DNA of 64,000 nucleotides from Oculina patagonica (lineage: Eukaryota): assembly GCF_052425735.1 (NCBI RefSeq), contig NC_135766.1:21328001-21392000 (forward strand). The letters run 5' to 3'. Numbering within the stretch: the first letter of the stretch is position 1; each line of letters begins with the position of its first letter. This document shows, piece by piece, positions 53,431 through 59,395 of this stretch. The notes beneath the pieces are model-generated. The model had not been told where the DNA came from, searched no databases, and worked only from the letters and a program-made list of their open reading frames with translations. Both the position numbers and the translations under genes were made by a program.

Positions 53431-54125
53431 ATGGCGTCGTCGCGCGAGATGCAAATGATCCCTTTAGAGGCTTTTCCTCGAGTGAATGAAGGAATTCCGG
53501 AGCAACTTCCTGCCAAAGATGCTTGGGTGGAGGTTAAGTTTCCCTCAAGGCCCCGGCGAAAAGTTGTGATCATCGCTGGTGTTATTGCAGTACTTATAGT
53601 TGTTATCGTTGCAGCATCCCTGATTGGAAAATACGTCTCAGACTATTTAAGCGACGCTAACAACAAATGTAAGTACTGATAACATTTTGAATACTGTATT
53701 TCCGCATCTCCTTTGTCTAGCGCAATAATTTGCCTTGCGGGTGAGGGTGTAATTTCCATCTAAAAATTGCAAACCTAGGCCTGTATTCAGACTGTCACTC
53801 CTCTCTTGATTAACTGCATGAACAGCGCCAAGAAACAGAAGCTTCTGAAGCTTTGTTATGGATGCATATACAATATGATACTCAGTTCTCGGTCATCGAG
53901 AACAGTGTTCAAACAAAGTCGTCTTGTTCTTGACACTCACAGCAGTCTGCATTCTCAGACATCACTGGCTGACAATGTGCTGCAGATGATATAAACATTC
54001 AGTGATTAGTTCTAGTACCGTAATTAAAATAATTGATTATCTCCAACTACTAACTGGTACATTGATGAACTTTATTTTTCATTTCTGTGTGTGTACATAC
54101 ACTTTTCTTTTTTTTGTTCTCTGTC

Positions 54126-54181
<56 letters not shown>

Positions 54182-57100: not shown

Positions 57101-59395
57101 CTGCTTAAATATTCTTCACACTTATTTCCATTACTTTTAGCTCTTCGAAAGTCAGTAAAGGCAGTTGATCAAAACAAAACCCAACTGGAGTGTTCTAGTA
57201 CTGCAAAGACCCAGCAGCTTGAGCAAAAGATAACTCAGATCACTGAAGAAGTTGCAGCCACGAAATCTTGTGCTTGTTCTTCCCCTGGTACCAAAGCACA
57301 TACATCCATTAAACCTGTGACAAGCCAAAGCATCGCTTCGGATGGACCTGGAAAAGGCACAAGCCAGGACCCTTATAAAATTGCAAGCATCCAAGACTTG
57401 CAAAAACTACGAAGCATATGGAACAACAATAGAGGCAAATATTTTATAGTTACACAACACATCGACCTATCTTCTATTGCTAACTTTGCTCCTTTGCCAC
57501 GTTTTGAAGGGAATTTGGATGGGAACAATAAAAAGATTCTGAATTTGAAGATCGATTCGACTCATTTGAGTAGTCAAACAAACACCGGGTTGTTTGAGAA
57601 GATTGAAAGAACTGGACAAGTGAAAAACCTAGGACTTGAAAACGTATTGGTTATGGGGGAACAAAATGTGGGAGGATTAGCTGGATATAATTATGGCAGG
57701 ATAGACAATAGCTCTGTTACAGGACAAGTTTTAGGTACAAAAAAAAATATAATTCCGTAGGAAGTTTAGTTGGCACGAGTGACACAGGGAGTAGAATCAC
57801 TGATAGCTATGCTACCGCAAAGGTTTTTGGACCATACTATGTGCATGGGGGGATTGGTTGGAAAATTATTTGAAGGCACCATCCAAAACTGCTATGCGAC
57901 AGGCACTGTTTCAGGAACAGGGAATATTACAAACTATGAAAGCTGGGCAAATCAAATAGGAGGTTTGGTGGGAAAGAATTATGGCACGATCGTAAGCAGC
58001 TATGCGACAGGCGATGTTTCAGGGCAGTATTACATAGGAGGCTTAGTGGGCCTTAGTAGTTCTGGAGATCATATTAAAATAAACAATAGCTATGCGACAG
58101 GCAACGTTTCAGGCACGGGAATTATTGGCGGGTTAGTGGGAGACAATCGAGGAACAATTACAAAATGCTATGCCATAGGACAGGTTTCAGGAAAAGACAG
58201 ACTGGGTGGATTAGTCGGATGGAATACTGGCTGGATAGACAATAGCTATGTTACAGGACAAGTTTTAGGTACAAAACGTTCCGTAGGAGGTTTAGTTGGC
58301 CAGAGTACTAGCAGCGATAGTAGAATCACTGATAGCTATGCGACAGCAAAGGTTTCTGGACGATCCTCTGTTGGGGGATTGGTTGGATATTTATCTGGCA
58401 CTATCCAAAGCTGCTATGCGACAGGCACTGTTTCAGGAATAGAAAGTCAAATAGGAGGTTTGGTGGGAGGCCATTCTGGCACGATCCTAAGCAGCTATGC
58501 GACAGGCGATGTTTCAGGGCGTTATTACATAGGAGGCTTAGTGGGCCTTAGTGGTGGTGGACACCAAACCTTGCATGTTCATATAAACAATAGCTATGCG
58601 ACAGGCAATGTTTCAGGCACGGGGATTACTGGCGGGTTAGTGGGAGACAATCGAGGTACAATTACAAAATGCTATGCCATAGGACAGGTTTTAGGAAAAG
58701 ACAGACTGGGTGGATTAGTCGGAGATAATGATGGCTATATAGACAATAGCTATGCTACAGGACAAGTTTTAGGTACAGACTATGACATAGGAGGTTTAGT
58801 TGGCAGCAGTGGCAGCGATAGTAGAATCACTGATAGCTATGCGACAGCAAAGGTTTCTGGACGATCCTCTGTTGGGGGATTGGTTGGATATTTATCTGGC
58901 ACCATCCAAAGGTGCTATGCCACAGGCACTGTTTCAGGAATAGGAAATCAAATAGGAGGTTTGGTGGGAGGCCATTCTGGCACGATCCTAAGCAGCTATG
59001 CGACAGGCGATGTTTCAGGGCGGTATTACATAGGAGGCTTAGTGGGCCTTAGTAGTTTTGGACACCATATTAAAATAAACAATAGCTATGCGACAGGCAA
59101 TGTTTCAGGCTCAGCGATTATTGGCGGGTTAGTGGGAGACAATCGATGCACAATTGCAAAATGCTATGCCATAGGACAGCTTTTAGGAAAAAGAGACAGA
59201 GTGGGTGGGTTAATCGGAGAGAATTCTGGGAGAATCGAAGATAGCTATGGCAGACAGCAATTCGGTACTACAAACACACTTGGTGCAAAAACTGATACTG
59301 AATTAAAGACCCCATCTACCTTTACTGGTTGGGACACACGCCTTTGGAAACTGACACAGAATCAATATCCTAAACTTAAAATATTTTTGAACTAA
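53431..59395 (+). CDS. Chimeric type-II membrane protein: CILP-derived TM exon plus GLUG-motif (prokaryote-type beta-helix) ectodomain, ~830 aa; interrupted by two compensating indels in this assembly
   Basis: Exon 1 53431-53668 (paralogue of 30531-30765; donor T|GTAAGT, phase 1). Exon 2 begins after the acceptor TTCCATTACTTTTAG at 57140 and is open in the frame of ORFs 57317-57760 and 57770-59395. Motifs: GKGTSQDPYKIASIQDL, FEGNLDGNNKKILNLKI, GLF, ~20 [VI]GGL[VA]G..G.I..SYATG.V.G repeats, C-cap KTDTELKTPSTFTGWDTRLWKLTQNQYPKL. Confidence 0.75.
54060..54385 (+). repeat. (TG)n microsatellite (54130-54177) within a probable LINE 3' tail ending in (GTT)n
   Basis: About 24 TG units; CCCAGCCACTTAG..CTAAGTGGCTGTG stem, AATAAAA and (TTG)n tail; absent from copy A. 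Confidence 0.6.
55338..55705. mobile_element. Tc1/mariner-type MITE
   Basis: TACCGTAAAATTCCGGTTATAAGCCC ... GGGCTTATAACCGGAATTTTACGGTA; internal GGGCTTATA repeats. Confidence 0.88.
57701..59245 (+). repeat. Three ~500-bp higher-order tandem units within the GLUG exon
   Basis: ATAGACAATAGCT.TG.TACAGGACAAGTTTTAGGTACA at 57701, 58235 and 58739; long stretches of nucleotide identity between units. Confidence 0.92.

Follow-up and report, generated by a model that had tools for sequence, protein, structure and literature searches.

The window analysed here, a 64,000-nt stretch of the Oculina patagonica genome, carries at 53431-59395 a short exon encoding a membrane anchor, followed by a 3472-nt intron and a large exon made up mostly of GLUG repeats (Table 1). 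The short exon is a duplicate of the first exon of a CILP-like gene lying further upstream in the window. The large exon belongs to a family of coral genes whose repeat domain has its named relatives outside corals among prokaryotes and phages, and its reading frame is broken in two places.

Table 1. Features of the locus at 53431-59395 and of the parent exon (positions within the window)
Feature	Position	Strand	Evidence or remark
Copy of the CILP-like gene's 5′ flank, with promoter region	51972..53430	+	copy of about 29265-30530; blastn 51972-52624 vs 29265-29893 (72%), 53325-53738 vs 30420-30842 (79%)
Exon 1: 79 codons + 1 nt; cytoplasmic tail, RPRRK, 22-residue TM (type II signal anchor)	53431..53668	+	phase-1 GT donor at 53669
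Intron, 3472 nt, GT..AG	53669..57140	+	joint 53668>57141 in RNA run X8 only
High-copy repeats inside the intron	54020-54420, 54820-55820		depth as high as 3.5e5
Exon 2 piece A: coiled-coil neck, Cys/Pro linker, beta-helix N-cap, first GLUG turn	57141..57757	+	terminated by TAG 57758
A9 run, first frame break, +2 nt vs four intact homologues	57739..57747	+	DNA alignment; X1 contig 2 letters shorter here
Out-of-frame stretch with TAG 57758 and TAG 57767 in the exon's frame	57748..57846	+	GLUG turns SVGSLVG...ITDSYATAKVFGPYYV readable in another frame only
4-nt insertion, second frame break	57843-57846	+	homologue alignment; X1 contig
Exon 2 piece C: 17 GLUG turns, C-cap KTDTELKTPSTFTGWD...YPKLK, stop 59393-59395	57847..59395	+	541 codons open
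Internal tandem repeat, unit of ~500 nt (six GLUG turns), three copies, 81-95% identity	57669..59249	+	self-comparison
Parent exon 1, CILP-like gene: 78 codons + 1 nt, donor GTAAGT as in the copy	30531..30765	+	

The open reading frame at 53431-53679 contains the ATG-initiated first exon, whose last base is followed by GTAAGT. A preliminary description of this DNA, made from the letters alone, had called this exon a copy of the first exon of the CILP gene with a phase-1 donor, and this is what the comparison returns: the two exons are 85% identical over 265 nt, gap-free, and 79% identical over 433 nt by blastn. The duplicated block is larger than the exon, with about 51972-54821 corresponding to 29265-32522, and takes in the promoter side and the start of intron 1. 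Downstream exons of the parent gene encode TSP_1, CarboxypepD_reg, CILP_5th, CILP and CILP_C domains, hence the name CILP-like. The exon encodes a 44-residue tail, the basic motif RPRRK and a strongly hydrophobic segment of 22 residues (KD19 maximum 3.25 at VVIIAGVIAVLIVVIVAAS). The positive-inside rule makes this a signal anchor of type II. Comparison of the exon with its parent gives a dS of 0.28, and omega is 0.26 in the membrane and juxtamembrane part and 0.78 in the tail. In reads of related species, a fraction of about 0.17-0.19 of this copied exon-1 region's 31-mers recurs.

The acceptor of the large exon, TTTTAG/CT at 57139-57141, fits the phase of exon 1, as had been predicted. Its use is seen in RNA: a 154-nt contig from run X8 places 56 letters on 53613-53668 and 98 on 57141-57238 with no mismatch, skipping 3472 nt between GT and AG. 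Run X8 is an RNA-type library of the same species, presumed to be RNA, and the junction is represented by a single contig at depth 2.9; the joint 53668>57141 is absent from DNA run X1. Contigs of X8 at ≥98% identity also cover the duplicated exon 1 itself, and because this exon is only 85% like its parent, the match shows that the duplicated promoter is active. Over 57620-57819 there are no RNA contigs at ≥98% identity. The source of exon 1 is known and RNA contains the junction; a chimeric transcript, in which the duplicated CILP-like anchor exon is joined by splicing to the GLUG exon, is supported.

The repeat content of the large exon is as first read from the sequence (about 20 GLUG repeats between an N-cap and a C-cap). 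The Pfam Glug model (PF07581; gathering cut-off 20.5 bits) matches 13 stretches with a total of 220.7 bits (E 8e-68) and one more in piece A with 28.9 bits, about 19 GG[LF]VG motifs can be counted, and both cap motifs are present. GC at third codon positions is 0.35 in this exon, which is host-like, and 0.41 in the CILP-like exon. An Rfam scan of 50000-60500 gave two tRNA-like matches only, which are irrelevant to the gene.

The preliminary description had further taken 57141-59395 to be one open exon of 2255 nt. It is not: two in-frame stop codons (TAG at 57758-57760 and 57767-57769) interrupt it. We aligned the DNA of the window with four homologues whose frame is intact (L001, L005 and a pair of copies from Oculina), and relative to these the window has two extra letters in the A-run at 57739-57747 and four at 57843-57846, both of which are missing from all four. 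The 4-nt insertion was checked in the assembly and in the reads of one sample (run X1), the probable source, which contains a fraction of 0.99 of the words of the exon-1 region. A DNA contig of X1 over 57731-57904 has seven A's rather than nine, keeps the 4-nt insertion and is otherwise identical; its depth is 20.4, compared with about 21-26 in flanking single-copy contigs. The assembly is thus not error-free at 57739-57747. With nine A's translation stops at TAG 57758 and with seven near 57873, so the frame is broken in both cases, at a cost of about 520 helix codons and the C-cap. A small intron that would remove the out-of-frame stretch was considered and rejected: there is a GT at 57736 and no AG acceptor 3′ of the 4-nt insertion, and earlier acceptors lead into a frame that ends near 57873.

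The 541 codons downstream of the indels remain open, so the break is young; with the indels adding up to +6 as well, the gene may have been functional until recently or may be polymorphic. An intact gene, functional in nature, would be the stronger version of this, with the frame breaks put down to errors in assembly or reads, or to an uncommon allele in the colony that was sequenced. The long downstream frame, the conflict between A9 in the assembly and A7 in the reads, the transcription and correct splicing of the locus, the apparent constraint on the membrane part of the duplicated exon and the occurrence of part of the exon-1 copy region in related species all speak for it. We nevertheless hold it to be unlikely: the 4-nt insertion is not within a homopolymer and lies in a DNA contig at full single-copy depth, the A7 frame still ends early, and neither insertion occurs in any of the four homologues. 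The dN/dS ratio is uninformative as a pseudogene test here, since intact paralogues have equally high values. The window copy is probably a transcribed young pseudogene or a truncated gene or allele, and in annotation it should carry a frame-broken flag.

The best protein matches to the GLUG exon are 16 coral proteins with N-cap identities of 74-87%, among them Oculina patagonica models and proteins from coral assemblies; the next are prokaryotic proteins at no more than 43%. A search with the N-terminal piece gave 19509 matches at E up to 0.001, and among the best 150 of these, corals appear only as four cluster representatives. One representative (P0162) has the stalk motif in common with the window at 50% identity, and its relatives include proteins of Montipora foliosa (named ‘putative Gly-rich membrane protein Bcell_0380’ in RefSeq) and Porites evermanni. 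The family is therefore present in at least three genera of stony corals: Oculina, Montipora and Porites. The Montipora protein runs from a short tail through a TM segment, a long coiled coil and a Pro/Thr linker to a shorter GLUG helix. Bit scores of the N-cap fall into three ranges, 203-256 for proteins of the Oculina type, 147-180 for the Montipora/Porites type and at most 84 for prokaryotes.

On an Oculina chromosome, locus L002 holds a tandem array of at least four GLUG units, adjoining genes for histones H2A, H4 and H3. Three of these units have upstream a 61-nt leader exon (MAISCFAVTFIIVVLTFSPE with one further base; GTAAGT follows, in phase 1) and then an intron of 1.2-8 kb, and the homologue L005 has this canonical leader exon 4.6 kb upstream. 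The RefSeq model LOC144639076 from Oculina looks like two array members merged. The acceptor sequence is identical in the window, L001, L005 and Oculina. From about 56.3 kb onward the window aligns to the Oculina units (intron piece 90%, exon 85-86%, 3′ flank 78-79%), so that it retains the end of the family's intron, the large exon and the 3′ flank; the canonical leader exon has no match in the 64,000 nt of the window. Conversely, exon 1 of the window has no match in L002, a locus that begins downstream of the upstream gene. The anchor exon has here taken the place of the older leader exon. In every copy examined the GLUG part is intronless, and the paralogues range from 373 to 940 aa with a variable number of repeats. 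Among intact paralogues dN/dS is 0.7-1.3 in the stalk and N-cap and 0.35-0.57 in the C-cap.

This family structure bears on the earlier proposal that a microbial gene was captured and placed on the cell surface by recruiting this very anchor exon. Its nearest homologues belong to an animal family that is old and has an intron, with members in Oculina, Montipora and Porites, an outcome that the preliminary description had itself named as refuting. This family already had its own hydrophobic leader or anchor exon, its phase-1 intron and the same acceptor, and the proposal does not hold for this exon.

As to the fold, an AlphaFold2 model was made on the intact paralogue P0003 (87% identical; 22 aligned sequences) rather than on the broken protein of the window. 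In the model (pLDDT 88, pTM 0.84) a helix spans residues 8-41 and a disordered linker 38-66, and the right-handed beta-helix with caps that had been anticipated begins at 76 and extends to about 531. Its best matches among solved structures are 3N6Z and the beta-helix domains of IgA1 proteases, and its AFDB matches are GLUG proteins (GLUG clusters at E 1e-25 to 1e-15). Neither HExxH nor LPxTG was found in the protein sequence. A membrane anchor followed by a coiled-coil stalk and a distal repeat domain suggests, as an architecture, a surface protein for binding or recognition, and with this layout the intended product would probably be such a module and not an enzyme. The variable repeat number, the three ~500-nt units at 81-95% identity and the high N-terminal dN/dS fit a recognition role, which they are compatible with and do not prove.

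The origin of the GLUG part was examined in a tree of the N-cap (81 rows, 149 columns, unrooted). All coral sequences fall into a single clade (support 100/99, stem length 1.09), the remaining rows are all prokaryotic, and there is no supported sister group. Nesting of corals among prokaryotes, as expected in the initial reading, is compatible with this tree. The coral clade has two groups, the Oculina type, where the window is sister to P0010, and the Montipora/Porites type. The nearest prokaryotes with names are marine bacteria, Balneola (a T9SS-sorted protein) and Sedimentisphaera, and Thermoplasmata, Nanoarchaeota and Planctomycetota are also among the protein matches. The Atlas clusters matched are bacterial, archaeal or phage, as are all named or classified non-coral relatives that were found, and this upholds the description of the intronless GLUG part as prokaryote-type. 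There are no non-coral eukaryotes among the named matches, in a list where most matches are nameless. Oculina is a robust coral, while Montipora and Porites are complex corals, these being two clades of stony corals. A family with members on both sides of this division has a long history in stony corals, provided that its two subclades are not old paralogues.

Two other accounts of this part of the gene have to be weighed. Bacterial contamination or an assembly chimera would fit a prokaryote-type, intronless domain, and is refuted by several observations: a DNA contig (56719-57313) spans the border of intron and exon, spliced RNA exists, and the chromosome-level Oculina locus has conserved counterparts of the flanks and of pieces of the intron. 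The GC3 value, too, is that of the host, and we give this account practically no weight. An old animal or eukaryotic family that was lost elsewhere, with no prokaryotic transfer at all, would sit well with the age of the family in stony corals, with its intron, coiled-coil stalk and host-like composition, and with the failure to find a supported prokaryotic sister group. It would, however, have to explain why corals make up only four cluster representatives in the best 150 of 19509 matches, why the named or classified relatives outside corals are all bacterial, archaeal or phage and the named matches include no non-coral eukaryote, and why no examined copy has an intron in its GLUG part; we find it highly improbable. 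Going by these sequence comparisons, the GLUG part of the family most likely came from a prokaryote long ago. Prokaryotic transfer, as first proposed for this locus, is thus supported for the family as an old event, and what the locus itself records is a later swap of the 5′ exon. Full-text literature searches (GLUG + coral, GLUG + horizontal gene transfer, PF07581, and the RefSeq name + coral) returned nothing relevant, and the GLUG family is absent from the 13 candidates for coral-specific transfer that are shown in Table 1 of Bhattacharya et al. 2016 (PMC4878875).

The history that we favour, with reasonable though not full confidence, is that the window holds a copy of the stony-coral GLUG family whose 5′ end was exchanged for a CILP-like anchor exon and which is now a transcribed pseudogene or truncated allele. 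The family is built on two exons, a short one for a hydrophobic leader or anchor with a phase-1 donor, then a single large one for a coiled-coil stalk joined by a linker to a right-handed beta-helix with caps. A segmental duplication would then have put the 5′ end of the CILP-like gene (promoter, first exon and part of intron 1) upstream of a GLUG exon. Because the duplicated exon ends in phase 1, it is spliced in frame to the acceptor already there, as the RNA shows. If complete, the product would sit in the membrane in type II orientation, with a 44-residue cytoplasmic tail, TM segment, stalk and extracellular beta-helix. The 4-nt insertion, together with the longer A-run of the assembly, now halts translation after the N-cap and one to three turns.

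Few cases are so far at hand of bacterial genes that animals have kept and diversified. In reef-building corals an entire family of surface beta-helix proteins seems to have become fixed; it expanded in tandem and acquired eukaryotic anchor and stalk modules. Its tandem expansion, high N-terminal dN/dS (0.7-1.3) and gain of anchor and stalk make it a plausible candidate for coral-microbe or coral-symbiont recognition, and the family merits more attention than the decayed copy in the window. As a more tentative idea, which we would not put forward as the likelier outcome, stony corals may possess an expanded, fast-evolving family of type II anchored stalk and GLUG proteins, derived from a prokaryote before the split of Complexa and Robusta, that act as receptors for microbes or symbionts, with swaps of the 5′ exon altering the targeting or signalling tail. 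The locus itself illustrates how a gene can be taken over by the promoter and anchor exon of a neighbour through matching intron phase, and how quickly such experiments can decay.

Among known systems, the prokaryotic GLUG surface proteins (PF07581; Balneola T9SS-sorted, Sedimentisphaera) have the same GLUG turns and beta-helix fold as well as the caps, the N-cap (G.GT..DPY.I, F.G.LDGN) being 35-43% identical and the C-cap having the form TF.GWD...W. The coral proteins differ in adding an intron, an exon for a eukaryotic TM segment or leader, and a stalk of coiled coil, in their host-like codon use, and in having no T9SS, SLH, LPxTG or other bacterial sorting module. The M26 IgA1 proteases and Zmp proteins (6XJA, 7JGJ, 7UVK) and BACOVA_03286 (3N6Z) are the best solved beta-helix matches (E 2e-6 to 1e-3), with a weak match to Peptidase_M26_N that scores 20.8 and so falls short of the cut-off of 27.7. 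They have no more than the non-catalytic helix in common with the coral protein, as HExxH, LPxTG and a Peptidase_M26_C match are all lacking here. Filamentous-haemagglutinin-like (TPS) adhesins had also been brought into the comparison, and Pfam at E up to 0.1 gives neither a TPS domain nor haemagglutinin repeats.

The canonical coral GLUG genes (ACROYT_G043027 / LOC144639076 in Oculina, the Montipora foliosa gene with the Bcell_0380 name and that of Porites evermanni) have the same large exon, acceptor, phase and caps as the window, which at 74-87% N-cap identity lies inside the subclade of the Oculina-type genes. They differ in the first exon, which is a 61-nt hydrophobic leader in Oculina, presumably an exon for another TM anchor in Montipora and the copy of CILP-like exon 1 in the window, and in the window's broken frame. 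Chimeras that arise by segmental duplication and exon shuffling likewise have a duplicated promoter and first exon spliced to a neighbouring gene with matching intron phases. Unlike in such chimeras, the recipient here is itself most likely transfer-derived, and one membrane-targeting exon replaces another with no domain added. The locus thus joins two known kinds, the transfer-derived animal gene and the exon-shuffled chimera.

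Table. Coordinates of additional features (window positions except where L002, the Oculina patagonica locus on CM126648.1, is named)
Feature	Position	Strand	Remark
Further duplicated piece	24805-25095 / 50311-50601		5′ of CILP-like 5′ copy
Further duplicated piece	25682-25842 / 51411-51564		5′ of CILP-like 5′ copy
tRNA match	51133-51206	-	
tRNA match	51263-51340	+	
Very high-copy repeat	54020-54420		GLUG-gene intron
Very high-copy repeat	54820-55220		GLUG-gene intron
Very high-copy repeat	55220-55820		GLUG-gene intron
Perfect 22-nt tandem duplication	57030-57073		AATTCTGTTTCCGTAAAAATAT x2
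ORF, possible type II anchor start	63343-63996	+	MASAPEERNAKRNK...CLVFILVVVALVAIAVLFATLLP
GLUG N-cap fragment	L002 8507-8647		

Since two more duplicated pieces lie upstream of the copied 5′ end of the CILP-like gene, the duplicated block may extend all the way from the promoter on the H2A.Z side into intron 1 of the CILP-like gene. The identity of these pieces (96% and 92.5%) is much higher, which points to an independent event or to gene conversion. The two matches to tRNA score 66 and 55 bits and are arranged as an inverted pair with 92% identity; either tRNA genes or a repeat derived from tRNA could account for them.

The intron of the window GLUG gene (53669-57140) contains repeats whose word depth reaches ~3.5e5 in the DNA run. 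One intron piece (56331-56594) has 90-91% identity to Oculina GLUG introns, against 85-86% for the coding exon, and partially matches the intact GLUG locus L005 in both orientations; possible readings are a conserved regulatory element and a shared MITE. The 22-nt tandem pair lies ~70 nt 5′ of the GLUG-exon acceptor. Besides that of the GLUG gene, another possible type II anchor start is found in the downstream ORF, possibly exon 1 of the following gene.

At the tandem GLUG array (L002 10001-33380), residues 23-561 of the 940-aa protein P0002 match array copy 1 and residues 527-940 match copy 3; its RefSeq model, LOC144639076, probably joins two tandem GLUG genes into one. Comparison of intact paralogues over the stalk and N-cap (loci L001, L002 and L005, with window 57143-57736) gave dN/dS of 0.7-1.3 at dS of just 0.06-0.16, which suggests that evolution of the GLUG family, a set of stony-coral genes, is fast or diversifying.
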